NCBI GenBank assembly: GCA_002269645.1
Contig: NIVC01003604.1
Location: forward strand, 24,472 to 88,471
DNA from: Macrostomum lignano
Taxonomy: Eukaryota
Direction of reading: 5' to 3'
Length of the DNA: 64,000 nt
The number at the start of each line of letters is the position of its first letter. The first letter of the stretch is position 1. Shown here piece after piece: positions 1,896 through 49,393 of the stretch. Under the pieces are notes generated by a model that was not told where the DNA came from, made no database searches, and saw nothing but the letters and a program-made list of their open reading frames with translations. The position numbers and the translations under genes were made by a program.

Positions 1896-4800
1896 TCAGA
1901 TGCTGGCAGAGTAGGTCTCAGCGTCACCAGCCAGCCGCTGAACAGTCTCAGGGTCCAGCGCAGCCGATCCAGTCAGCAGTTCCAGCTCGCCAGTGTCTCC
2001 AATAGCGAAATCGTCTTCAAGTCGAACACCGCCAAGTCCGCGGAACTCCTGATGCACCAGCTGACAGTCAGGGGACAGGTAGAGCCCCGGCTCCAGGGGA
2101 AACACCACGCCACACTGCAGAGGCTCCGACCTGGACACGCTGGGCGTATCGTGGACGTCCATGCCGAGATAGTGAGACACGTGATGAGGACAGAGGGCGT
2201 GGCACAGCGCGTGAGAGCTCAGGCTGGCCCCCGCCTCGGTGAGCATCGAGGCTTCAATGAGGCGAGCCCGCAGCTTCTGGCCCATGTACAGGTGGACATC
2301 GTCAAGCGACACTCCGATCCGACAATGATCCCGACAGTCAATCAGTAGCTGACGGACAATCTCGTAGGCAACTAGCTGATGAGGCGTGAAACCGTCCGGG
2401 GAGGCTGGCCAGGTTCGAGTGATGTCGCTAACGTAGCCTTGGACATCAGCGCCGGAGTCGGCAAGGATGAGGTCGGGCGGCTGCACCGGCCGGTTGTTCT
2501 TCATGTAGTGAATCACCGTGGAGCGCTGGCCGCCGCCTGGCGAGAATGAGGGAATAGTGGAAAAATGAGCATTATAGGAGATGGATATAGTCTCTCGTTC
2601 AGAAGGGAGAAATAAGTAGATAGTGGAGAAGTAGACAGATAGAAGCCAAGTAGGCAGGAGAAAAGGTAGGAGAGAATTAGACAGAGGAGAGAAGTAGACA
2701 GAGAGGAAAGAAATTAGAAATAAAGAAGAGAAAGTAGACATAAAGGAGAGAAGTAGACAGAGAGGAGAAGAGTAGACAGAGGAGAGAAGTAGATATAAAG
2801 GAGAGAAGTAGACATAGAGGAGAGAAGTAGACATTAAGGAGAGAAAATAGACATTAAGGAGAGAAAGTACACATGAAGGAGAGGAGTAGACATAAAGGAG
2901 AGAATAGACATAGAGAGAAAAGTAGACAGGGGAGAAGTAGACATAAAGGAGAGAAGTAGACATAGAGGAGAAAAGTAGGCAGGAGAGAAGTAGACAGAGA
3001 GAAGTACATATAGCCATGAGAGACAGACGGAGAGATGAAAGAAAATTTGATATCTCAGGTCAGAAAATGTCGTTTTATTATTTCAAATCCAAGCTACGCA
3101 TTTAAGGTGCACACGCAGCAACTGCAGACAGACAGACAGATAAGAAGCCATTTTAGCTGCTAAACTCAAGCCAAGACTAATTTCCTATCATGCCGTGTTG
3201 CAAAGGATTTAGAGAAATTGATTTTGACTGGCAGAGAAAAAATGATATTCACAAGACTTTTGAGAAGTTGCTGAGAACTACAATGCACACGAGTAGAGTT
3301 ACGATTGCAAGATTTGAAAACCTTATAAAAAGAAATATGAGCTGCCAGACTTCATCATTATTTGAGAGAAAAAACTCTTTAGAAGTAGGCAGGGTGGAGC
3401 GAGGGCGATTTTGAGGGAGTAGAGAGAGGCAGGGAAATGGGATGGACATATGCAGATAGAGAGTAGACAGGGATGCAGACAGAGTAAACAGAGATACAGA
3501 CAGAGTAGACAGAGATGCAGACAGAGTAGACAGAGATGCAGACAGAGTAGACAGAGATGCAGACAGAGAATAGACAGAGATGCAGACAGAGATGCAGACA
3601 GAGAGTAGACAAAGATGCAGACAGAGTAGACAGAGATGCAGACAGAGTAGACAGAGATGCAGACAGAGAGTAGACAGGGATGCAGACAGAGAGTAGACAG
3701 AGATGCAGACAGAGAGTAGACAGAGATGCAGACAGAGAGTAGACAGAGATGCAGACAGAGAGTAGACAGAGATGCAGACAGAGAGTAGACAGAGATGCAG
3801 ACAGAGAGTAGACAGAGATGCAAACAGAGAGTAGACAAAGATGCAGACAGAGTAAACAGAGATACAGACAGAGTAGACAGAGATGCAGACAGAGTAGACA
3901 GAGATGCAGACAGAGAGTAGACAGGGATGCAGACAGAGAGTAGACAGGGATGCAGACAGAGAGTAGACAGAGATGCAGACAGAGAGTAGACAGAGATGCA
4001 GACAGAGAGTAGACAGAGATGCAAACAGAGAGTAGACAAAGATGCAGACAGAGTAAACAGAGATACAGACAGAGTAGACAGAGATGCAGACAGAGTAGAC
4101 AGAGATGCAAACAGAGAGTAGACAAAGATGCAGACAGAGTAAACAGAGATACAGACAGAGTAGACAGAGATGCAGACAGAGTAGACAGAGATGCAGACAG
4201 AGAGTAGACAGGGATGCAGACAGAGAGTAGACAGGGATGCAGACAGAGAGTAGACAGAGATGCAGACAGAGAGTAGACAGAGATGCAGACAGAGAGTAGA
4301 CAGAGATGCAAACAGAGAGTAGACAAAGATGCAGACAGAGTAAACAGAGATGCAGACAGAGAGTAGACAGAGATGCAGACAGAGAGTAGACAGAGATGCA
4401 AACAGAGAGTAGACAAAGATGCAGACAGAGTAAACAGAGATACAGACAGAGTAGACAGAGATGCAGACAGAGTAGACAGAGATGCAGACAGAGAGTAGAC
4501 AGGGATGCAGACAGAGAGTAGACAGAGATGCAGACAGAGAGTAGACAGAGATGCAGACAGAGAGTAGACAGAGATGCAGACAGAGAGTAGACAGAGATGC
4601 AGACAGAGAGTAGACAGAGATGCAAACAGAGAGTAGACAAAGATGCAGACAGAGTAAACAGAGATACAAACAGAGTAGACAGAGATGCAGACAGAGTAGA
4701 CAGAGATGCAGACAGAGAGTAGACAGGGATGCAGACAGAGAGTAGACAGAGATGCAGACAGAGAGTAGACAGAGATGCAGACAGAGAGTAGACAGAGATG

Positions 4801-7800
4801 CAGACAGAGAGTAGACAGAGATGCAGACAGAGAGTAGACAGAGATGCAGACAGAGAGTAGACAGAGATGCAGACAGAGAGTAGACAGAGATGCAGACAGA
4901 GAGTAGACAGAGATGCAGACAGAGAGTAGACAGAGATGCAAACAGAGAGTAGACAGAGATGCAGACAGAGTAAACAGAGATACAGACAGAGTAGACAGAG
5001 ATGCAGACAGAGTAGACCCAGCAGTGCTATAGTACCAAGAAGGGTAAAGCGAGAGTAATGAGCAATAATCAAGGTACAACTGGGCGTGAGAATTAGAAAA
5101 AAGTTTAACACGACCGCTCTCTGTGAAGCTGGGCTTCAATGAATAGATTAGGTTTTTTCCCAGCTGATGCAGAATTTATTTGATTTAAAATCGGATTCGG
5201 CTTTGCTTTGATCTCTGACCGACTCCCGACTTTCTGAGAGCAGATGCATCGAAAAGTTGATTGGGGATGAGAGAGACGGAGACAGAGAGAACTTTTGAAT
5301 TTTTTGCATAGCCATACGGAATAAAATCACTTCTATGTGATGCATTAGTAAATGTCAAGTATGACTCATTGCATCTGTAAATCCTGTCTCCATATCTATC
5401 ACTTGAGTATCCCTACATCTATCACTTGAGTATCCCTACATCTATCACTTGAGTATCCCTACATCTATCACTTGAGTATCCCTACATCTATCACTTGAGT
5501 ATCCGTATATCTATCACTTGAGTATCCCTACATCTATCACTTGAGTATCCCTACATCTATCACTTGAGTATCCCTACATCTATCACTTGAGTATCCCTAC
5601 ATCTATCACTTGAGTATCCGTATATCTATCACTTGAGTATCCCTATATCTATCACTTGAGTATCCCTACATCTATCACTTGAGTATCCCTATATCTATCA
5701 CTTGAGTATCCCTACATCTATCACTTGAGTATCCCTACATCTATCACTTGAGTATCCCTATATCTATCACTTGAGTATCCCTACATCTATCACTTGAGTA
5801 TCCCTACATCTATCACTTGAGTATCCCTATATCTATCACTTGAGTATCCCTATATCTATCACTTGAGTATCCCTACATCTATCACTTGAGTATCCCTACA
5901 TCTATCACTTGAGTATCCCTATATCTATCACTTGAGTATCCCTACATCTATCACTTGAGTATCCCTACATCTATCACTTGAGTATCCCTATATCTATCAC
6001 TTGAGTATCCCTACATCTATCACTTGAGTATCCCTATATCTATCACTTGAGTATCCCTACATCTATCACTTGAGTATCCCTACATCTATCACTTGAGTAT
6101 CCCTACATCTATCACTTGAGTATCCCTATATCTATCACTTGAGTATCCCTACATCTATCACTTGAGTATCCCTATATCTATCACTTGAGTATCCCTACAT
6201 CTATCACTTGAGTATCCCTACATCTATCACTTGAGTATCCCTATATCTATCACTTGAGTATCCCTACATCTATCACTTGAGTATCCCTATATCTATCACT
6301 TGAGTATCCCTACATCTATCACTTGAGTATCCCTATATCTATCACTTGAGTATCCCTACATCTATCACTTGAGTATCCCTATATCTATCACTTGAGTATC
6401 CCTACATCTATCACTTGAGTATCCCTACATCTATCCATAGAGTATCCCTACATCTATCACTAAAGTATCCCTAGATCTACCCTACAGTAATCCCTAGATC
6501 TACCCTACAGTAATCTCCACATCCATCCCTACAGTAATCAATACATCTAAACTACGATATCCCTACATCTAACCTACAATATCCCTACATCTAACCTACA
6601 ATATCCCTACATCTAACCTACAATATCCCTACATCTAACCTACAATATCCCTACATCTAACCTACAATAATCCCTGCATCTAACCTATAGTAATCCCTAC
6701 ATCTATCACTACTATTTGGCAGCCATAAATGTCCCAAAACTAACTCACCAATCACAGGCGGATAGGCCAACCGATCCGCTCCCAGCCTTCGACATTCAAA
6801 GTCCAACACGGCCCACACGGCAGCCTCATTAATATCCGGCTTAGTCGCTCTCATAGCCGAGTTCATCGCCTCAGAACCGATTAGAGCCGCTCGACGCATG
6901 ACAGCTAACTCTTTGGCTGACTTACGCCATCGAACTCGGTCCAACACGGGCTCAATGTTGGCCACTGCCTGCGGGCCGCGCTGTTTCACAGCTGCTAAAA
7001 CCAGACTGCGATCCAGATTGCCATTGGCTGGCTCTTTGTAGTTGTACCATAGAGCTAACCTGGGGTGAGGGCGGCGATGTATGTCTGAGTTTAAGTCTCG
7101 TATTTCTAATTTGTATGAGATGTTATCATTGAGTCGTTTCATACGACTCTGTATCTCCGCTGCCCATCTTCTTACCTCTCCGCTTCCCAACTCCTAAATC
7201 TCTACTCCCGTCTCCCTGCATCTCTACTCCCTGTCTCAATGCACCTCTACTCCCCGTCTCCCTGCACCTCTGCTACCCTTCGCCGTCTCAATGCACCTCT
7301 ACTCCCCGTCTCCCTGAACCTCTACTCCCCGTCTCAATGCACCTCTACTCCCCGTCTCCCTGCACCTCTACTCCCCGTCTCAATGCACCTCTACTCCCCG
7401 TCTCCCTGCACCTCTACTCCCCGTCTCAATGCACCTCTACTCCCCGTCTCAATGCACCTCTACTCCCCGTCTCAATGCACCTCTACTCCCCGTCTCAATG
7501 CACCTCTACTCCCCGTTTCAATGCACCCCTACTCCCCGTCTCAATGCACCTCTACTCCCCGTCTCAATGCACCTCTACTCCCCGTTTCAATGCACCCCTA
7601 CTCCCCGTCTCCCTATATCTCTACTCCCCGTATCCCTATATCTCTACTCCCCGTATCCCTATATCTCTACTCCCCGTATCCCTATATCTCTACTCCCCGT
7701 ATCCCTATATCTCTACTCCCCGTATCCCTTTATCTCTACTCCCCGTCTCCCTATATCTCTACTCCCCGTCTCCCTTTATCTCTACTCCCCGTCTCCCTAT

Positions 7801-14638: not shown

Positions 14639-17600
14639 TTAAACGGAAGCAGCGTTGCCAACAGAGGCTAGAGCGGCACTCAAACTCCTTCTCAACAGCC
14701 GATCGGGACAGTAGCGCACCAGCCTGTCGCAAGCAGCAATCGCAGCCTCTTCAGCTCCAGGAAATTGACTAGCCAGCAAAAGCAGAAGACAGCGAACAGC
14801 GGAACAGGCCGACTGTTGCTCAGGACTGGCGCTGTTAAGCAACTTTGATGATGAAGAAGAAGAAGCTGACACAGGCGGCAACAAGTGAAGCTGGGCAGCA
14901 TCGAATCGATCAATCAGATATCGCGGTAGAAAATCCAAACTCTGCCGACAGACGCTACTAATACTACTGTTATAAGTAGCTAAATTCACTAGAAAATCGG
15001 CAACAACATCCGGCTGCTCGAATCGATTTTTACGCATCGAATCGGCAAAGAAGGCTAGAAACAGTCTAGCCAGAGGACTGCTATCCAGGTGTTGGCAAAC
15101 CAATCGACTACTGGCATTTAGCCAATAAGTAGTATCTGTAGCCAGTATTTTAGCTGTAGAAGATCTTGTATTGGAGTATCTAGCAGCTAAGTAGTTATAG
15201 ACGGCCAAAGCGAATGCGTCTGTGTTAGCCTGACCGAGACAGGCCTGCAGCTGGGGACCCGCCAGCAGGGCGCACTCCACTATCGCATTGTTCAGCTCCG
15301 TAGATTTCCTTGCCAAGTCTTTCAGTGCGTCTCTGCCGCCGTGGCTCTTGCGACGCTTCTTGTTAGCCTGACCGGAGCCGGCTGACGACGAGTCCGCAGT
15401 GGCAGACACGGTCAGGGGGAACAGGGGACACAGGACTGACGACAGTAGGTCTGACACAGCCAGCTGACAGGGTGTGAACCGTCTGTTGTTGGAGCGCTTT
15501 CTACCGGAGTCTGGAGCAGAGATGAGGTGGGGGTTTGGGTTGGGTTAATGAGACCTGATGGTTGATTGTAAAGGAAGTACTGCGATCAATTAACCTGCGG
15601 ATATTGTCGTTCAACTAATGGATCATCACAACGAACTATTAATCTATTAAATAATCAATTCTCTGACTGGGATTTTCCTGACTGAGATTCCCCTGACTGG
15701 GATTTCACTGAATAGGATTTCCTTGAATGGGATTTCCCTTGACTGAGATTTCCCTGAATGGGATTTCCCTGACTGGTATTTCGCTGACTAGGATTTTCCT
15801 GACTGGTATTTCCATAACTGGGATTTCCCTAATTGGGATTTCCCAAACAGGGATTTCTCTGACTAGGATTTCCTTGAATGGGATTTTCCTGACTAGGATT
15901 TTCCTAAATGGGATTTCCCTGACTAGGATTTCCCGGACTAGGATTTCCCAAACGGGGATTTCCCAAACTGGGATTTCTCTGACTGGGATTTCCCAAACGG
16001 GGATTTCCCTGACTAGGATTTCCCTAAATGGGATTTCGCTGACTGGGATTTCCCTAACTAGAATTTCCTTAACTGGCATTTCACTGACTAGCTAGGATTT
16101 CACACAGCAGAATTTCGAACTCATAATACAATGTCAATCTAATTAGGCATTCAAAGTGTCAAAAAATGTTACCATTATTAGGTTTTCCAGCGGTGAAACA
16201 GTCACACTGCCACCAACGCTCCTCAGAGCCTACTAGATTGTCACCGCCCCTGTCTCGCCTCCCGGCAGCGGTGCGAGCAAAATGCAAGGCCAACAAGCTT
16301 CTCAGACACTTCAACAAAGCCAGCAACTCTTCATAAGCGTTCACGCCGCCAACTCGACCAGAGAACTCAGCGGGAAACAGCTCTTTAATTAGGCTAGCAA
16401 AATTCACTTCAAAACTACTGCTATCGCTGCTAATTGAAGATTCTGCGCCGCCAGTCTCTGCATCGTCGACAAGTAGGTCTTTGTCTTTGTTACTGCTGCT
16501 GTTATAAAGATCGGAGATGGCCAAGCCAACCAGAGCTGTAGGATCCGAGTCCGTAGCCGCCAGGTCGCAGTTCCAGCTGAGCTGATAGCGGGACCAAGCG
16601 GCGCTGTATAAATCGAAATCGTCCGGTAGGTAGTCGAGAATCCTACTCTGCTGGTGCTGAGCAGATGATGAAGCATCTGAGCTGCTCAACTGGGAAGCTG
16701 GAAGTGGTGGGTTAAAGAATAAAAAAAACGGAAAAGTTATCTTCCACGATGTCACGATGTCACGTGAATGACAGGGCCGCTGTACACAGTACACAGTACG
16801 GAGTCAGCGCTAATGGGCAGATGTGCAACCGACAGCTCAGCTGCAGCTATTGCGGACCCTCAATTATCCCAGCTAATCCTGGCATCCATTTTACAGCTGG
16901 GTGAACTGAAGCAATGCAGAGTTAAGTGTCTTGCTCATAAGGACACAAATTGTTCCGAGTGGGATTGGGAATCGAACCCCCGACCTTTCAGTCGTGAGTC
17001 CGACGCTCTGACGGCTAGGCTACAACCGACCACACTCCCTCCAACGATCGTCAGCGCTGCATGGCATCAAAGCCATTCTTTAATGGCTTCTGAGGGCGAT
17101 TTTAATGGCTTTTGAGGGCGATTTTTTCTGGCTTTTGATGGCAATTTTTAATGGCCATGATCTTTGAGGGCGATTCTGTATTGGCTTTTGAGGGCGATTT
17201 TTTCGGGCTTTTGAGGGCGATTGTTTCTGGCTTTTGAGGGCGATTTTTTCTGGCTTTTGAGGGCGATTTTTTCTGGCTTTTGAGGGCGATTTTTTCTGGC
17301 TTTTGAGGGCGATTTTTTCTGGCTTTTGAGGGCGATTTTTTATGGCTTTTGAGGGCGATTTTTCTATGGTTTTTGAAGGCGAATTTTTATGGCTTTTGAG
17401 GGCGATTTTTCTATGGTTTTTGAAGGCGAATTTTTATGGCTTTTGATGACGATTTTTTTATGGCTTTGAGGGCGATTTTTATGGCTTTGAGGGCAATTTT
17501 TTATGGCTTTTGAGGGCACTTACCGGAAGAGTAGTTCTCAGCCAGCAGGTCGGCAAAGCTGGCCACACAGGCAGCCAGCGACATCAGCTGGCCTCGACTT

Positions 17601-19081
17601 CGCTGAGCCACCGAAGCTGAAGCAACACCCGCACCAGCAGCAGCCGCTGATGCCCCTGTTGGCACTGTCGCAGTTAAACGCCTCTTCAAACTTCGATTGA
17701 GCAACGCTCGAAAATCGTCAGCACGTTCCAACAGTACAATGGGAGCGTGAGTTAGCAAGGACTCGAGTAGTTGTACCGATTCGTTTTGAATTGATTCGTC
17801 CACGTGACACCAACAGGTGCGCAGAGACTGGAACAGAGCAGGCCGGCACACTGGCTGACTGGCAACGCCGCAGGTGAGCAGGGCGGTGAAGACACGTCGG
17901 CAGGCTGATCGCAGTTCTGCGCTGGCTGGATCGCGAAGGCATGGGGACAGGTACTCGGTCAGATCCTGCACTGTGAATGGCACTGGCCGGTTGCGTTGCT
18001 GCTGCTCTTGCTGAGCGGCAGCCAGGTCTGCCAGCCACCTGAGCATTGCAGTGGGGTGGGCTTTCAGGTACTTGAGGGCGATTCAGGTACTTGAGGGCGA
18101 TTCTTTGATGAGTTTTGAGGGCGATTCTTTGATGAGTTTTGAGGGCGATTCTTTGATGAGTTTTGAGGGCGATTCTTTGATGAGTTTTGAGGGCGATTCT
18201 TTGATGAGTTTTGAGGGCGATTCTTTGATGAGTTTTGAGGGCGATTCTTTGATGAGTTTTGAGGGCGATTCTTTGATGAGTTTTGAGGGCGATTCTTTGA
18301 TGAGTTTTGAGGGCGATTCTTTGATGAGTTTTGAGGGCGATTCTTTGATGAGTTTTGAGGGCGATTCTTTGATGAGTTTTGAGGGCGATTCTTTGATGAG
18401 TTTTGAGGGCGATTCTTTAATGAGTTTTGAGGGCGATTCTTTGATGAGTTTCGAGGGCGATTTTTTGACGGGTTTTGAGGGGCGATTCTTTGATGAGTTT
18501 TGAGGGCGATTCTTTGATGAGTTTCGAGGGCGATTCTTTGATGGCTTTTGAGGGCGATTTTTTGATGGCTTTTGAGGGCGATTCTTTGATGAGTTTTGAG
18601 GGCGATTCTTTGATGAGTTTTGAGGGCGGTTCTTTGATGTCTTTTGAGGGCGATTCTTTGATGGCTTTTGAGGGCGATTCTTTGATGAGTTTCGAGGGTG
18701 ATTCTTGGATGCGCTTTAAGGGGGATTTTTTAGACTTACAGTAAATATCTAAACATCCCTAATCAACTCATTACAATCAAGTCCAAAACTTATCCCAAAC
18801 ACGAACCTGGCCAACTTGTTAGCCGCGGCCACTCGCTCGTCCATCTGGCTGGCTCTCAGTTTTCGCAACAGAGCCTGGCCCGTGGACCACTGCAGCGGCT
18901 GGCTGGCCGGAGATGCCAAATCAGCCGAGCTAGCGGCGGACTCCTGACCGCGAACAACAATTTTACCTGTAGCCAAACTGATTTTTGTTTCGTTCAGGCA
19001 TTTCGGCAACTTTCGACCAACTTTCAGGCGCACTTTAGTGAAGTCGGCATTTTTCTCTTTCTTTTTGTGATGCTTCACCAT
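14639..19081 (-). CDS. TEX10: TEX10/Ipi1-like pre-60S (rixosome) component, 4 exons: join(19081..18807, 18038..17524, 16697..16173, 15510..14639), 728 aa
   Basis: N-terminus MVKHHKKKEKNADFTKVRLKVGRKLPK matches the TEX10/Ipi1 start (KKRK..DFQKVKLKVGK). Exon 2 has HVDESIQNESVQLLESLLTHAP, resembling the Ipi1_N region ([22 protein letters not shown]). Phases are consistent: 275+515+525+872=2187 nt. The C-terminal half is helical-repeat-like but not independently recognisable. Confidence 0.85.
15660..16095. repeat. 15-bp GGGATTTCCCTGACT tandem repeat
   Basis: Tandem periodicity in TEX10 intron 3. Confidence 0.9.
16790..17030 (-). mobile_element. tRNA-derived SINE, family B (TEX10 intron 2)
   Basis: On the minus strand: TAGCCTAGCCG (A box), GGTTCGATTCCC (B box), then GTGTCCTTATGAGCAAGACACTTAAC and TCAGTTCACCCAGCTGTAAAATGG, motifs I recognise from conserved central domains of metazoan SINE superfamilies. 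Confidence 0.7.
17085..17520. repeat. ~23-bp TTTTGAGGGCGATTTTTTCTGGC tandem repeat
   Basis: TEX10 intron 2; GAGGGCGATT family. Confidence 0.9.
18065..18725. repeat. 24-bp TTTGAGGGCGATTCTTTGATGAGT tandem repeat
   Basis: TEX10 intron 1; GAGGGCGATT family. Confidence 0.95.
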
Positions 19082-19219
19082 GGCTTGGCAGCTGAAATAT
19101 TTGTTTAAGATATCGTTATGCATAATGTCTGAAATAAGCTGCTGAGATGCCAATGCTTAAAAGCGTATGTAGCAATATGTTACGACTGGGGCACTCCACA
19201 CCTGCTTGTCGACACTAAC

Positions 19220-21100
19220 ACAACAACAACCCCAACCAAAGCCAACCCGAACCACAACCAACCCGAACCACAACCAACCCGAACCACAACCAAAGCCAAC
19301 CCGAACCACAACCAACCTGAACCACAACCAACCCGAACCACAACCAACCGAACCACAACCAAAGCCAACCCGAACCACAACCAACCCGAACCACAACCAA
19401 AGCCAACCCGAACCACAACCAACCTGAACCACAACCAACCTGAACCACAACCGACCCGAACTACAACCAACCCGAACTACAACCAACCCGAACCACAACC
19501 AACCTGAACCACAACCAACCTGAACCACAACCAACCTGAACCACAACCGACCCGAACTACAACTAACCCGAACTACAACCAACCTGAACCACAACCAACC
19601 TGAACCACAACCAACCTGAACCACAACCACCCCGAACTACAACCAACCCGAACTACAACCAACCCGAACCACAACCAACCTGAACCACAACCAACCTGAA
19701 CCACAACCAACCTGAACCACAACCAACCTGAACCACAACCACCCCGAACTACAACCAACCCGAACCACAACCAACCTGAACCACAACCAACCTGAACCAC
19801 AACCACCCCGAACCACAACCAACCTGAACCACAACCAACCTGAACCACAACCAACCTGAACCACAACCACCCCGAACTACAACCAACCCGAACCACAACC
19901 AACCTGAACCACAACCAACCTGAACCACAACCACCCCGAACTACAACCAACCCGAACCACAACCAACCCGAACCACAACCAACCCGAACCACAACCACCC
20001 CGAACTACAACCAACCCGAACCAGAAAAAACCTGAACCACAACCAACCTGAACCACAACCAACCTGAACCACAACCAACCTGAACCACAACCAACCTGAA
20101 CCACAACCAACCTGAACCACAACCAACCTGAACCACAACCAACCCGAACTACAACCAACCCGAACCACAACCAACCTGAACCACAACCAACCTGAACCAC
20201 AACCAACCCGAACTACAACCAACCCGAACCACAACCAACCTGAACCACAACCAACCTGAACCACAACCAACCTGAACCACAACCAACCCGAACTACAACC
20301 AACCCGAACCACAACCAACCTGAACCACAACCAACCTGAACCACAACCAACCTGAACCACAACCAACCTGAACCACAACCAACCCGAACTACAACCAACC
20401 CGAACCACAACCAACCTGAACCACAACCAACCTGAACCACAACCAACCCGAACTACAACCAACCCGAACCACAACCAACCTGAACCACAACCAACCTGAA
20501 CCACAACCAACCTGAACCACAACCAACCCGAACTACAACCAACCCGAACCACAACCAACCTGAACCACAACCAACCTGAACCACAACCAACCCGAACCAC
20601 AACCAACCCGAACCACAACCACCCCGAACTACAACCAACCCGAACCAGAAAAAACCTGAACCACAACCAACCTGAACCACAACCAACCTGAACCACAACC
20701 AACCTGAACCACAACCAACCTGAACCACAACCAACCTGAACCACAACCAACCTGAACCACAACCAACCCGAACTACAACCAACCCGAACCACAACCAACC
20801 TGAACCACAACCAACCTGAACCACAACCAACCCGAACTACAACCAACCCGAACCACAACCAACCTGAACCACAACCAACCTGAACCACAACCAACCTGAA
20901 CCACAACCAACCTGAACCACAACCAACCTGAACCACAACCAACCTGAACCACAACCAACCCGAACTACAACCAACCCGAACCACAACCAACCTGAACCAC
21001 AACCAACCCGAACTACAACCAACCTGAACCACAACCACCCCGAACTACAACCAACCCAAACCACAACCAAAGGCAACCCCAACCAAAGCCAACCAACCAC
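19220..21100. repeat. 16-bp AACCACAACCAACC(C/T)G tandem repeat
   Basis: More than 100 units upstream of the TEX10 ATG, with larger re-duplicated blocks (CCAGAAAAAACC variant at ~20022 and ~20645). Confidence 0.97.
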
Positions 21101-21730
21101 TAATAAACTAACCTAAACCCTTAACCGCAACCCTAATTGCTGACAGTGAAATAGTGGGAAGTCGAATTTTAGGCTAGAAAAAATGCAATTTCAGATTTTT
21201 GCTATTATTGAGCTTTCTCAACTTCTTTGGACATTCTGAAACATCTAAAACTCTAGTAGAAAAAAAACTTTTTGTCTACCCAACAGGGAGTTAAAATTAT
21301 TAGACAATGACTAAAACATATACTTTTAGTAAGAAAATAAAAAGCTTGAAAAGTTTTGCATAGTATATTTTTCAATTATTAAAACAATTTTAGAATAAAA
21401 ATATATAAAATACGAATTTACATCACAGCTTCGGCTTTTTGTCAAGGTATGACAAAATCAAGGTCTTGAAGTCATTGGCTCTGCTCGTGTAATTAAGTCT
21501 TAGAACGGCGTTCATTCAGATTCTTCATTAATTTTTTAGTATAGATGGAAATATGATTTATAACTGCCAAGTTCGCAGTGCAATAACAACAAGGATACTG
21601 AATGATTAGCCATGCAGTGAAAACTGTTTTGCTGTTTCCATAGTATTACATAATAGCAGGGAATGTGACATGATTAAGGCAATAATTAGGTTGGAGCAAA
21701 AAGTTAGATTAGATAATCAGATATCAAGTT

Positions 21731-23606
21731 TTACGGGCGGTCCAGATTAGGTCGAACATGCACTGGGCTTGGGTTCAAGTTCAAACTGTTTAACAATTCC
21801 ATCAATTCAACTGGAGCTGTAGGCGAGAATATCAGCACCTGAAATGATGGAGGTTCGGAGCTTTAGTCAGCGGCATGGCGTTTCTTTAAAGTGCTAGATG
21901 AACTTTTCAGGAAGTTAAAAGACGATTCTTTGATGGCTTTTGATGAGTTTTGAGGGAGATTCTTTCTTGGCTTTTGACGGCGATTCTTTCTTGGCTTTTG
22001 AGGGCGATTCTTTCTTGGCTTTTGACGGCGATTCTTTCTTGGCTTTTGAGGGCGATTCTTTCTTGGCTTTTGACGGCGATTCTTTCTTGGCTTTTGAGGG
22101 CGATTCTTTCTTGGCTTTTGAGGGCGATTCTTTCTTGGCTTTTGAGGGCGATTCTTTCTTGGCTTTTGAGGGCGATTCTTTCTTGGCTTTTGACGGCGAT
22201 TCTTTCTTGGCTTTTGAGGGCGATTCTTTTTTGGCTTTTGACGGCGATTCTTTCTTGGCTTTTGAGGGCGATTCTTTCTTGGCTTTTGAGGGCGATTCTT
22301 TCTTGGCTTTTGAGGGCGATTCTTTCTTGGCTTTTGAGGGCGATTCTTTCTTGGCTTTTGACGGCGATTCTTTCTTGGCTTTTGACGGCGATTCTTTCTT
22401 GGTTTTTGAGGGCGATTCTTTCTTGGCTTTTGAGGGCGATTCTTTCTTGGCTTTTGAGGGCGATTCTTTCTTGGCTTTTGAGGGCGATTCTTTCTTGGCT
22501 TTTGAGGGCGATTCTTTCTTGGCTTTTGAGGGCGATTCTTTCTTGGCTTTTGAGGGCGATTCTTTCTTGGCTTTTGAGGGCGATTCTTTCTTGGTTTTTG
22601 TGGGCGATTCTTTCTTGGCTTTTGAGGGCGATTCTTTCTTGGCTTTTGAGGGCGATTCTTTCTTGGCTTTTGAGGGCGATTCTTTCTTGGCTTTTGAGGG
22701 CGATTCTTTCTTGGCTTTTGAGGGCGATTCTTTCTTGGCTTTTGAGGGCGATTCTTTCTTGGCTTTTGACGGCGATTCTTTCTTGGCTTTTGAGGGCGAT
22801 TCTTTCTTGGCTTTTGAGGGCGATTCTTTAATGAGTTTGGTGGGCGACTCTACTAAAAATGGAATATATTGTTTTAAGGTTTAAACAAAGCACAGCCTAC
22901 CTGCAAACCTTCAGGCATCTGACTAATTATGTTAATCAGATTGTTTTTGAAACCTCGTCTAATCAAATCGTCGGTCTCAGTGAGGATTATCAATCGTATC
23001 TGAGCAGTGCTCAACCATCCTCGATTTATTAAGTCTTCAACTCGGCCTGGGGTGCCAATCGCAATATCCACGCCTGCATCTAGCTCAGTCTTCTGATCCC
23101 GCGGCTGGGGAAATGGGATCGAACGATTCATAAATAATTATGGGATAATTGATAGACAACGCCAATAGAACTATTCGATACGCCAAATCACAAACCTTAA
23201 TACCTCCAACGCAAGCGCAACACAATACGCCCATTGATTTTCCCAGGTCATTAAACATGAATCTCGCAGATAGAGCCAACTCTCTTGACGGAGTCAGCAC
23301 CAAAGCTTGAGCTGTACGACTCTGAACAGGATTGTCAGGATTTGTAGAGCTCAAACTTGGGAGTTTCACTGATTGCAGAACTGAAATTGCGGCCATAGAC
23401 ATCTTGCCAGTGCCAGACGGTGACTGAACAAACACATTTTCCCCATTCAAGTACAAAGGGAAAGCTTGATTTTGAATTGTAGACAGTTCGATAAAACCAT
23501 GGTTACGGATGGAGCGTTTCAGTGTATCGTTTAGTGGCAGGTCATCGAATGTGTCTGCGTTGGGACTCTGGCCAGACTTGCTAGCGGAGACCATATTTTG
23601 TTTCAT
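21731..23606 (-). CDS. eIF4A-like DEAD-box protein, N-terminal RecA domain only, degenerate motifs; join(23606..23196, 23104..22901, 21838..21731), ~240 aa
   Basis: Aligns by eye with eIF4A residues ~30-240: TFDDLPL, Q motif GFIELSTIQ, SPSGTGKM, ALVLTPSRELA, CACVGG, IGTPGRV, LIILTETDDLIRRGF, QVLIFSPTAP, then stop. Two phase-0 GT-AG introns. The start codon is uncertain (23606 or 23594, or an upstream exon). Confidence 0.8.
21920..22835. repeat. 24-bp TTTGAGGGCGATTCTTTCTTGGCT tandem repeat
   Basis: Intron 2 of the eIF4A-like gene; GAGGGCGATT family. Confidence 0.97.
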
Positions 23607-23684
23607 AATAACTGCAATATTTACACAGAACTGAGAGTCACTAAGACACAATTTAAAAACGGCTTAGAGTTTAGGAGATTTTTG

Positions 23685-24015
23685 AAGTTTGGGGGATTTT
23701 AAAAGCTTGGGTATTTCTGAAACTTAGGGGTTTGAGAAGCTTGGGGGATTTGGGAAGCGGGGGGATTTGAGAAGCTTGGGGATTTGGGAAGCGGGGGGAT
23801 TTGAGAAGCTTGGGGGATTTGGGAAGCTTAGGGGATTTGGGAAACTTGGGAGACTTGAGAAGCTTGGGGGATTTGGGAAGCTTGGGGGATTTGAGAAGCT
23901 TGGGGGATTTGGGAAGTGGGGGATTTGAGAAGCTTGGGGGATTTGGGAAGTGGGGGATTTGAGAAGCTTGGGGGATTTGGGAAGATTGGGGGATTTGGGA
24001 AACTTGGGAGATTTT
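23685..24015. repeat. ~17-18-bp GGGAAGCTTGGGGGATTT tandem repeat
   Basis: Same family at 24590-24935 and 37290-37440. Confidence 0.9.
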
Positions 24016-24368: not shown

Positions 24369-24590
24369 TTATAAAGGCCAATAGATTTTGAATTGTGACA
24401 CACCGCCACGTCCGCCAGCAGCTTTAATGATCGCCAAGCCTAACGGCTCATCGAGTTTTCTTACGTCACTGCCAGTCTGACCCTCGACTGCGACAGTCTG
24501 CAACACAGTGCCGTCACTCCGCATCAAACAAACCACTTGCCCTGAACACTCGCTGACAAACAGCAGACCCGACCGATTTGAGAAACCGGA
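24369..24590 (-). pseudogene. 3' fragment of the Cys-finger/coiled-coil/NHL gene family (copy 0)
   Basis: Translates as [51 protein letters not shown], the last propeller blade of the family, with a frameshifted end. Upstream it is replaced by a GGGATTTGGGAAGC tandem array. Confidence 0.85.
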
Positions 24591-24935
24591 GGAATTTGGG
24601 ATTCGGGAAGCTTGGGTATTCAAGAAGCTTGTGGGTTTTGGGAAGCTTGGGGATTTGGAAAGCTTGGGGATTTGGAAAGCTTGGGGGATTTGGAAAGCTT
24701 GGGGGATTTGAGAAGGTTGGGGATTTGGGAAGCTTGGGGGATTTGGGAAGCTTGGGGGATTTGGAAAGCTTGGGGGATTTGAGAAGGTTGGGGATTTGGG
24801 AAGCTTGGGGCATTTGGGAAGGTTTGGGATTTGGGAAGCTTGGGGGGATTTGGGAAGGTTTGGGCGATTTGGGAAGCTTGGGGGGATTTGGGAAGGTTGG
24901 GGATTTGGGAACCTTGGGGGATTTGGGAAGCTAGA
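24590..24935. repeat. ~17-18-bp GGGAAGCTTGGGGGATTT tandem repeat
   Basis: Direct tandem periodicity abutting the copy-0 fragment. Confidence 0.9.
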
Positions 24936-25563
24936 TACCCACTTTAGCAGACGCTCACTGTTCGCATGTGCCATGCGGCACACACAGCAAACATTTTGAC
25001 CAAAATTTGTCAACTGTCAGTTGACATCTGAGACTATAAAATCTCATTATTGGTACTTTCCTTCAGTTTAAAAGGACAGTTAAGACAAAGTCTCGAAGTC
25101 TCAATTCACAAGCAGTGGTTCAGTTGGTAAGTGGACATAGGACTGCTCTATCAAGCTTAAGTTTGGTCGCCAGGAGGGAGGCAACTGCTTCATTTACAAT
25201 TGGAAAAATTCCCGCTAATCTTAGTGACCTTTGCGCCTACCTTATTGGATTTTGAACACATAATCTGAAAATCCTTGAGATATTACTAAATAACTTTATT
25301 AACAAAGTAGTCAATTGTTCAAATATTTCTTGTAAAAAAATTGAAATAAAAAAATAATGGTTTCAGTTTAGAGAAATCAGATTTTAGCGCAGAAACGAAC
25401 AAAAAGTACAAAAATAGCAAAAGAATGAAACACTACATAAAAATAAAAAACATAAAACTTGGCAGTTGATAAAAATTGTTAATTACATTGCTGGTATTCA
25501 TGTATTAGTTAAATTTCCAAATTTTGAGTAAATTCTCTTGATGAGTATCAGACATGCTAAATA

Positions 25564-38325: not shown

Positions 38326-39773
38326 TTACACAGCGTCAAAAAAGCTTACAATGTAATTATCACGAATGTATAATGAACTTAAATAATTATACACACTAAG
38401 CTTATAAATGCCAATCGATTTTAAATTTTGACACACCACCAGCAGTTTAGGGCTTCCATCAACGATTGCCAAGCCCAATGGGTTGTCAAGTTTTCTTCCA
38501 CCACTGCCAGTCTGACCTTCGACTGCGACAGTCCGCAGCACAGTGCAGTCACTCTGCACCAAACGAACCACATGCCCTGAACTCTCGCTGACAAACAGCA
38601 GACCTGACCGATGAGCCGCGACACCAACAGGTCCACGAAACTTTTCAAGAGGGCTTCGCTTAGTAGGGTAGGCTGAGATCAGCTGACCGCTGGTGACACA
38701 TTGTAGAGCTTGCCACCTTCATAGTCAGTGAGCAGCAGTGCGTTGTCAATTACAGACATGCCCTCGACATATTTACCAGAGGAACTAATACCAACCAAGT
38801 TAATTCTGGCCAGCAGCTGACCGCTGTCTTTATCGATGCACAGCACTGACCATTCTGGTTTGCCGTTGCTCAAAGCAAATATCTTGTCAGAGCTGCAGGC
38901 CAAGGAAAAAGTTGACTGGCCCTCCTAGGTTGCTCGAGTTGAAGACCTGCGTTACGCAGCCGCTCAGGGCCGTCACCTTTACTTCATCAAACTGAGCGAC
39001 ATAAAGAGTGTGTCGCTTGCTGTCACAGCAGAGTCCTACAACAGTTTTTGAGGTATCAATGTAGAGCTGCAGCCCGGCTTTCACTAAGCCCTCGATTGAG
39101 CAGGCAAGGTGGTTTATCTTATCATTAAGATGAAAACTAATGAAGAGACACGGCTATGGCAGCTCTCTGTCAGGGCCCTGTTTGACCACATTGCTCTGAG
39201 AATCCACGTAAAAGCCTTGCGTGTTTCTGCATGATGACACATAATATATGGAGAACCCGGCAGATCTTTTATCATAGATTGAAACTCACAGATTGGCTGA
39301 TCTGCACTAAGAGACTCTGCTGACTCGCACAGCTGCATCACATCACTCAGGTGTTTGTCAATCAGCAGCTGCAAGTCTCTCACACAGCCGCTCACATCGC
39401 CTACAGTCCTTCCAGTGCCTCGCTCAGAGTCTTCGGTAATAGACGTGCCAAATACCATCTGTAACTCGTTACTCTCAATATCGAATGCGCCAGAAATCTC
39501 AAACAGTTGAGATTTCAGCGAGTCCACAGCCGACTCAAACAGCTTCTCAGTCTCTTGCAGCTCAGCTGACAGAGCTTGCTGTTGCATCCGAAAGTCTTTC
39601 TGCAATTTCAGCAATGGCTTCAGCTTTTTCTGAATATTTTTGCATAGATCTCGCACAATTTCTATGTCCTGCTCAATGTGTTTCTCACACAATGGCTGTA
39701 GGATTCGAATACCAGTGCCACATGCGGGATCGTTGCAGCATTTGATAAAACAAGAAGTGCTCGGTTCGGACAT
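38326..39773 (-). pseudogene. Full-length but disrupted NHL-like gene (copy 4)
   Basis: Split across ORFs 39114-39773, 38887-39084, 38679-38903 and 38326-38571 by frameshifts. An internal deletion removes most of the coiled coil (AVDSL joins to KSQLFEIS). Confidence 0.88.

Positions 39774-41455: not shown

Positions 41456-42783
<1,328 letters not shown>

Positions 42784-47776: not shown

Positions 47777-49393
<1,617 letters not shown>

Follow-up and report, generated by a model that had tools for sequence, protein, structure and literature searches.

What does a gene encode when it carries only the first half of a DEAD-box helicase, with catalytic residues replaced, and keeps an open and spliced reading frame? 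Such a gene lies on the minus strand, between positions 23606 and 21731, of a 64-kb stretch of contig NIVC01003604.1 from Macrostomum lignano; this stretch is the window to which all coordinates below refer. The defining feature of DEAD-box proteins is a pair of RecA domains, which close on ATP and RNA. The protein encoded here, which we call the half-helicase, has the N-terminal of these domains (RecA1) and lacks the C-terminal one (RecA2). Our analysis suggests that it descends from the eIF4A family and has lost the ability to work as an enzyme, and the reading that we favor, with about even confidence, is that it serves as a noncatalytic binding module that is most likely under selection. 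The half-helicase is real and unusual, and both a selected binding or decoy protein and a slowly dying copy stand as explanations for it.

The descent of the half-helicase can be read from domain and structure comparisons. The Pfam DEAD domain (PF00270) matches residues 43-218 (E=7e-30), and the best matches among solved structures are the N-terminal domains of human eIF4A2, eIF4A1, and eIF4A3 (128-132 bits, E ~1e-37 to 1e-36). The structural matches include chains from the PDCD4-eIF4A (2ZU6, 3EIQ) and eIF4G-eIF4A (2VSO, 8HUJ) complexes, while weaker scores were obtained for yeast eIF4A (~1e-28), Dhh1 (~1e-27, 100 bits), DDX6 (~1e-24, ~90 bits), and bacterial helicases (at most 92 bits). The half-helicase is closest to eIF4A proteins, not to other DEAD-box subfamilies, and homology to the eIF4A N-terminal domain, which a first-pass annotation of this DNA had proposed from the letters and their translations, is borne out by both the Pfam and the structure-database scores. 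An AlphaFold2 model built with 29 relatives has a mean predicted local distance difference test score (pLDDT) of 88.6, with low confidence limited to 12 residues at the start, 4 at the end, and an inserted loop at residues ~81-98. Foldseek superimposes this model on the crystallized DEAD domain of eIF4A1 (5ZBZ, 2G9N, 7DDX) with target-normalized template modeling (TM) scores of 0.90-0.94 and a root mean square deviation of 1.5-1.7 Å, and the predicted fold is that of a complete RecA1 domain.

Several DEAD-box hallmarks are kept in this domain, namely F20/Q45, G65/G67/K68, PxRELA, GG, and TPGR. Motif II (D-E-A-D), motif III (S-A-T), and Walker A (GK[TS]) are lost and read TETD, SPT, and GKM in both M. 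lignano copies of the gene, the second of which is described below. Pfam detects no Helicase_C domain in the protein, and motifs IV, V, and VI are missing. In DEAD-box enzymology, the Walker A threonine and the first aspartate of DEAD coordinate Mg2+, SAT serves in coupling, and RecA2 carries the arginines of motif VI. Because the Walker A threonine has become methionine, the first DEAD aspartate has become threonine, SAT has become SPT, and RecA2 is absent, the half-helicase, as judged from its residues, cannot hydrolyze ATP or unwind RNA and is not an enzyme. The first-pass description of a catalytically dead eIF4A pseudo-helicase agrees with the loss of all four elements. According to the model, the protein should fold, and it should retain the RNA-contact motifs of RecA1 together with the adenine-recognizing Q motif.

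The coding sequence (CDS) consists of three minus-strand exons (23606-23196, 23104-22901, and 21838-21731), which join to 723 nt, that is, 240 codons and a TAA stop. Both introns are of the GT..AG type (GTTTGT...CCCCAG and GTAGGC...TTTCAG), and every junction is in phase 0. The first-pass annotation had described an open, correctly spliced three-exon frame, and its junctions (23196/23104 and 22901/21838) are identical to those of our rederived CDS, in whose translation we also recovered the motifs it had named (SGTGKM with its T-to-M change, TETD, and SPT). Exon 1 (23196..23606, codons 1-137) encodes a disordered N terminus, the Q motif (F20 and GFIELSTIQ with Q45), motif I (SGTGKM at 23417..23400, residues 64-69), a 12-residue insertion in the loop after the motif I helix (~residues 81-98), motif Ia (PSRELA), and the GG motif. 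It is followed by intron 1 (23105..23195, 91 nt), retention of which leads to a stop 41 codons past K137. Exon 2 (22901..23104, codons 138-205) encodes motif Ib (TPGRV) and the degenerate motif II (TETD at 22981..22970, residues 179-182). Intron 2 (21839..22900, 1062 nt) is mostly made up of a 24-bp tandem repeat with 37 copies (21948..22829), and here retention leads to a stop after 8 codons. The coding part of exon 3 (21731..21838, codons 206-240 plus TAA) contributes the degenerate motif III (SPT at 21826..21818, residues 210-212) and the last helix and strand of RecA1, and by itself it matches the family profile (E=0.006). The stop falls within the interdomain linker, 8 residues past the last RecA1 strand and 28 residues past SPT, close to the 30 or so amino acids estimated previously. 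On the same strand, the presumed 3' untranslated region (21100..21730) is ~630 bp of AT-rich unique sequence with a GC content of 0.31; the canonical AATAAA is absent from this segment, which holds only the variants TATAAA (at 21562) and AATATA (at 21369). A processed (retro)pseudogene was considered and rejected on the basis of the two GT..AG introns and the intact frame, and the same features uphold the earlier view that the gene is not a dead pseudogene.

A second RecA domain might in principle be encoded elsewhere at the locus. The 64-kb window is free of Ns and assembly gaps, and a tblastn search of it with human eIF4A1 matches exons 1 and 2 only and does not find RecA2. Profile hidden Markov models (HMMs) of the RecA2 half and of the whole helicase, run with --max against all six-frame segments of the 64 kb, recover the three exons only, and the top RecA2-like score (E=0.38) lies on the wrong strand within a repeat. 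The downstream segment 21100..21730 is without RecA2 homology, and no decayed RecA2 remnant is detectable in it. The next gene on the same strand, which is TEX10/Ipi1-like, begins 2.6 kb downstream and bounds the locus without leaving room for RecA2 exons. The C-terminal RecA domain reported as missing in the first-pass annotation is therefore absent from the 64 kb by both tblastn and profile HMM. Because there is no RecA2 in this sequence and the next gene lies only 2.6 kb away, alternative splicing to a downstream RecA2 exon, a counterexplanation that the same annotation had raised, is ruled out at this locus, within 21.7 kb.

The gene has already been deposited, uncharacterized, as GenBank PAA50590.1 ("hypothetical protein BOX15_Mlig002855g2, partial"), in which the half-helicase is preceded by one Ile. 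This record lies on scaffold NIVC01003604.1 of assembly Mlig_3_7; the locus of the record is identical to window positions 11731-33609, and its CDS (23609-21731) has the same exons. The Mlig_3_7 annotation was derived not ab initio but from RNA-seq assemblies guided by the genome (StringTie/TACO, supplemented by a de novo transcriptome), with transcripts split into genes at experimentally mapped spliced leader (SL) trans-splice and poly(A) sites and open reading frames (ORFs) called by TransDecoder (PMC5730564). Since this annotation was built from RNA-seq, the half-helicase junctions are transcript derived, and the half-helicase is very probably a genuine gene with a transcript-based model. 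The objection that no transcript might exist, which had been set against the first-pass interpretation, very probably fails in view of an RNA-seq-derived model with the same junctions.

The 5' end of the gene can be placed as well. The suffix "g2" in BOX15_Mlig002855g2 denotes the second gene of a multigene transcriptional unit, and the GenBank CDS is 5' partial and starts at 23609, one codon ahead of the ATG, which places the 5' end of the transcript at 23609-23611. A putative SL trans-splice acceptor, TTGCAG (23612..23617, minus strand), is found 5 nt upstream of the ATG and fits the M. lignano acceptor motif [T/C]TNCAG (PMC8629364); SL trans-splicing at this position is probable. In M. lignano, the last bases of the spliced leader are ...TTGCATG (PMC8629364). 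Were the leader joined at TTGCAG (window 23604-23617, minus strand), its AUG would open a 3-codon upstream ORF (AUG UUA UUA UGA) that overlaps the annotated AUG, and translation of the main ORF would depend on leaky scanning or reinitiation.

Only one close relative of the half-helicase exists among 5.8 billion clustered proteins, UniProt A0A1I8I7E0 ("RNA helicase," Macrostomum lignano, 240 aa), which is 97% identical. PAA50590.1 belongs to the cluster of this protein. Modeled independently, in the ML2 assembly, A0A1I8I7E0 starts and stops where the half-helicase does, and it differs at 7 amino acids (S9I, Q95L, S107T, L110M, R115S, F116C, and I197T). An assembly artifact was considered and rejected, as there are no Ns and two assemblies agree. 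When a 240-codon frame was simulated as neutral since the divergence from eIF4A, it stayed stop-free in ~0.2% of runs (P ~0.002, with indels not counted). Moreover, the half-helicase keeps 38 of the 49 alignment columns (78%) with a conservation of 80% or more among 28 relatives, a retention with a P value between 8e-9 and 7e-5 given ~35-45% overall identity, so that its divergence followed the constraint pattern of the family. The 11 losses in conserved columns are D57N, A62S, T69M, F72A, T107S, Q113S, D179T, A181T, M184L, L185I, and A211P, and the severe ones concentrate in the ATP-handling motifs I, II, and III. These comparisons of sequences indicate past purifying selection on the half-helicase gene.

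Whether the catalytically dead form was itself maintained can be approached through the order of events. The four changed catalytic residues are common to both copies, and the decay of the ATPase site is thus older than the split between them. These four changes need at least 5 nucleotide changes in ~30 nonsynonymous sites, a Jukes-Cantor distance of ~0.19, and a neutral 720-nt ORF would be intact at a distance of 0.05-0.1 with a P of ~0.0004 to 0.08 depending on the indel rate, a rough figure that derives from five events. Because the frame stayed open after the ATPase site decayed, selection most likely preserved the dead form over a long period.

The position of the half-helicase within the eIF4A family is less sharply defined. 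It is ~36-37% identical to human eIF4A1 and eIF4A3, with equal scores for both, and a search of 1.84 billion representative proteins found no relative between 42% and 97% identity, a gap that led us to reject a recent duplicate of canonical eIF4A. In a neighbor-joining tree, the half-helicase pair forms a long branch that joins the eukaryotic eIF4A-like clade at its base, and neither the BLAST scores nor the tree separate eIF4A1/2 from eIF4A3. A phylogeny against eIF4A1/2/3 and DDX6, as proposed in the first-pass annotation, thus gives a partial answer: the scores favor eIF4A over DDX6, and the long branch does not separate eIF4A1/2 from eIF4A3. Since these two origins are not separated, partners of the exon junction complex (EJC)/CWC22 type are equally possible.

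Our favored reading can be laid out as follows. The ancestor would have been an eIF4A-family DEAD-box helicase of which only the N-terminal RecA1 is now encoded. The fold of this domain would be normal, and the residues for Mg-ATP coordination and for the coupling of hydrolysis have been lost (GKT to GKM, DEAD to TETD, and SAT to SPT). Over a very long divergence, and still once the ATPase site had decayed, the gene has preserved its frame, its splice sites, its domain boundary, and most residues for the fold and for RNA contact. The protein would then act by binding and not by catalysis, as a lone RecA1 module that occupies partners of an eIF4A-type RecA1 but does not run through a helicase cycle. 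Candidate partners are MA3/MIF4G-type proteins (PDCD4, eIF4G, CWC22) or single-stranded RNA, which might be bound at low affinity. It is the selection of the truncated form and the identity of the partners that we infer here. A more far-reaching version, in which the dead RecA1 is a selected regulator in macrostomids that competes for the RecA1 partners of eIF4A/eIF4A3 (PDCD4/MA3, MIF4G proteins, RNA) and so tunes translation initiation or the assembly of EJC/messenger ribonucleoprotein (mRNP) particles, is tentative and, in our view, rather unlikely.

A number of observations weigh against a binding module under selection today, and most of them are what one would expect if the gene were a transcribed relic, an account that we regard as a serious one, although somewhat short of an even chance. 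It holds that a divergent eIF4A-like paralogue, possibly a full-length pseudo-helicase at first, recently lost its 3' half by deletion or satellite-associated rearrangement and is drifting toward a pseudogene with no selected function today, its transcription and SL trans-splicing persisting only by way of a transcriptional unit that serves neighboring genes. M. lignano is a neopolyploid rich in duplicates (PMC5730564, PMC10733133), with three subgenomes that differ by 1.9-2.4% in single-nucleotide polymorphisms (SNPs) (PMC10733133), and we assumed the second copy to be a homeolog. From the amino acid differences only and the genome-wide SNP divergence, with 551 nonsynonymous sites, 10.5-13.3 replacements would be expected between neutral copies versus the 7 observed, which corresponds to an omega of ~0.5-0.7 that is not clearly below 1 (P for 7 or fewer, 0.05-0.18); recent constraint thus appears weak at best. 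The earlier argument for selection accordingly holds in one part, in that the frame and the conserved residues are retained better than neutral decay would allow, but not in the ratio of substitution rates between the copies. Two of the 7 changes alter the near-invariant motif Ia, which has changed in each copy since the split (PSRELA versus PTREMA), and GC content at third codon positions (GC3) is low, at 0.45 versus 0.52-0.70 in neighboring genes. The neighborhood is a decaying one, with satellites on both flanks (23677-24014 and 19223-21070), another in intron 2, and a truncated NHL-like gene fragment (24369-25013) adjoining. As "g2" of a multigene unit, the gene could be transcribed passively; Mlig002855 does not appear in the searchable supplementary or differential-expression tables of M. 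lignano papers, and those published tables gave neither an expression level nor a tissue pattern nor evidence of the protein. Finally, no orthologue from other species is present in protein databases, which hold little macrostomid data. An exon of the TEX10-like neighbor gave no matches and a neighboring peptidase exon retrieved only 41-47% identical proteins from Logan assemblies, with no M. lignano protein from either search, so macrostomid data are scarce in the database and the absence of an orthologue is weak evidence for lineage restriction.

The relic account has more difficulty with the shape of what is left, since the stop lies exactly in the interdomain linker and leaves a whole domain that is predicted to fold with confidence, the frame, splice sites, and stop are kept in both copies, the catalytic decay predates the copy split in a frame that is still open, and no decayed remnant of RecA2 follows downstream. 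That the truncation is merely apparent, with RecA2 supplied by alternative cis- or trans-splicing or by a separate gene (a split helicase), or lost through misassembly, is an idea to which we give almost no credence. Trans-splicing is widespread in M. lignano and its assemblies are partly chimeric (PMC5730564, PMC10733133), but the TAA follows homologous sequence inside exon 3, the 240-aa product is the same in two independent assemblies and annotations, the window contains neither Ns nor RecA2-like sequence (on either strand, even with --max), and the next gene starts 2.6 kb downstream. Even a reconstituted core with GKM, TETD, and SPT would stay catalytically dead. The first-pass annotation had favored a selected decoy or dominant-negative regulator. 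A specific mechanism of this kind, a decoy that titrates eIF4G HEAT1 and PDCD4 away from canonical eIF4A and thereby lowers or tunes cap-dependent translation, we consider quite improbable. The best sequence and structure matches are DEAD domains of eIF4A1/2, including those of 2ZU6, 3EIQ, 2VSO, and 8HUJ, and the predicted fold is intact, but eIF4A3 is equally similar, the tree does not settle the origin, and surface residues are largely replaced at ~37% identity. Structures of eIF4G-eIF4A and mapping by nuclear magnetic resonance, the work of Schutz in 2008 (2VSO) and Oberer in 2005, reportedly place the main eIF4G interface on RecA2, so that a RecA1-only protein would be a poor decoy for eIF4G. 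The MA3 domains of PDCD4 contact RecA1 more, and an eIF4A3-type origin would point to CASC3 or CWC22 instead.

The surroundings of the gene are rich in repeats. A 16-bp satellite of ~115 copies (19223..21070, 1.85 kb) fills most of the space between the half-helicase and the TEX10/Ipi1-like gene (14639..19087, minus strand), which encodes 730 aa with a weak Ipi1_N match and whose CDS, starting at 19087, is also 5' partial and begins a few nucleotides after a TTTCAG. Adjusted for the satellite, the gap between the two genes (19087-21731, minus strand) is ~0.8 kb, which is inside the 1-kb repeat-adjusted intergenic distance that has been used as an operon criterion (PMC8629364), and the half-helicase may be cotranscribed with this ribosome biogenesis gene. 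Related 23- to 24-bp satellites with the common core GAGGGCGATTC are found in intron 2 of the half-helicase (21948-22829) and in introns of the TEX10-like gene (17079-17517 and 18091-18731), and other satellites flank the half-helicase on both sides, as given above. A satellite-associated rearrangement is a plausible, if unproven, cause for the loss of the 3' half.

Upstream, a tandem array (27132-56678, minus strand) contains at least 7 intronless paralogues of ~506 aa, each combining a coiled coil and an N-terminal Cys/His motif with weak NHL repeats (Pfam NHL, E=0.003). Of these, two are broken, one being truncated (39114-39773) and one split into two ORFs (47777-49294), and an NHL-like C-terminal fragment fused to an 18-bp satellite (24369-25013) lies directly upstream of the half-helicase gene. 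Between the NHL-like copies, an ORF fragment on the plus strand (41523-42036, LLYNAETW...) has no Pfam match; it may resemble the C-terminal region of a reverse transcriptase. At the other end of the window, exons of a Xaa-Pro aminopeptidase-like gene (1896-7190, minus strand; Peptidase_M24) were found, with AMP_N recorded for the called gene. Long satellites occupy the introns of this gene and produce spurious ORFs, longer than 300 aa, on both strands. In the 64-kb window, an Rfam scan returned no matches.

A naturally encoded and selected single-domain derivative of a DEAD-box helicase would, if our favored reading is true, represent a new type of pseudoenzyme, and it would offer a natural probe of what the RecA1 domain of eIF4A does alone, such as sequestration of partners or tethering of RNA. 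M. lignano is amenable to RNA interference and transgenesis, which makes the function of the half-helicase testable. If the gene is instead a decaying duplicate, it would be one of many fragments in a neopolyploid, satellite-rich genome, and caution would be needed over the database label "RNA helicase."

Among known systems, eIF4A1, eIF4A2, and eIF4A3 share with the half-helicase the RecA1 fold, the Q motif, the P-loop glycines and lysine, motifs Ia, GG, and Ib, and the lack of accessory domains, whereas the half-helicase has no RecA2, reads GKM, TETD, and SPT, carries a 12-residue loop insertion, and is only ~36-37% identical. Its boundaries are almost equal to those of recombinant eIF4A DEAD-domain constructs (2G9N, 5ZBZ, 3BOR, 1QDE, and 1QVA), and these crystallized fragments show that a half of this kind is able to form a stable domain by itself. 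The constructs, however, were made in the laboratory by truncating active helicases and have intact motifs, while the half-helicase is naturally encoded and has a degenerate ATP site. To our knowledge, naturally encoded RecA1-only eIF4A-like proteins are not a described class. Dominant-negative eIF4A mutants, described by Pause et al. in 1994, are catalytically dead and are said to interfere by occupying eIF4F, but these mutants are full length and need RecA2, the half that is missing here, to enter eIF4F.

The closest described concept is Utp25/DEF, a DEAD-box-derived pseudohelicase of the small subunit (SSU) processome (PMC9539457). Like the half-helicase, it combines DEAD-box descent with degenerate catalytic motifs and, as we propose for the half-helicase, is a nonenzymatic component. 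Utp25, which is conserved in eukaryotes generally, retains both RecA-like domains and belongs to a known complex, whereas the half-helicase has one domain, is known from a single species, and lacks a known partner. In Stomoxys calcitrans, predicted proteins (LOC106083760/"eIF4A-III-like" XP_059219390) have 6 to 7 DEAD domains and no Helicase_C, and one from the trematode Calicophoron daubneyi has four DEAD domains and one Helicase_C. These uncharacterized proteins resemble the half-helicase in their eIF4A-like RecA1 domains, in which at least some motifs are degenerate (for example, VLDDAH), and differ from it in carrying RecA1 domains in tandem in one polypeptide. With only ~29-31% identity to the half-helicase, they arose independently of it, and they may be RecA1-only derivatives in their own right or partly fused gene models. 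RecA1-only derivatives of eIF4A may thus arise repeatedly, and with such proteins also present in Stomoxys, the half-helicase of M. lignano could be one case of a recurrent evolutionary route.

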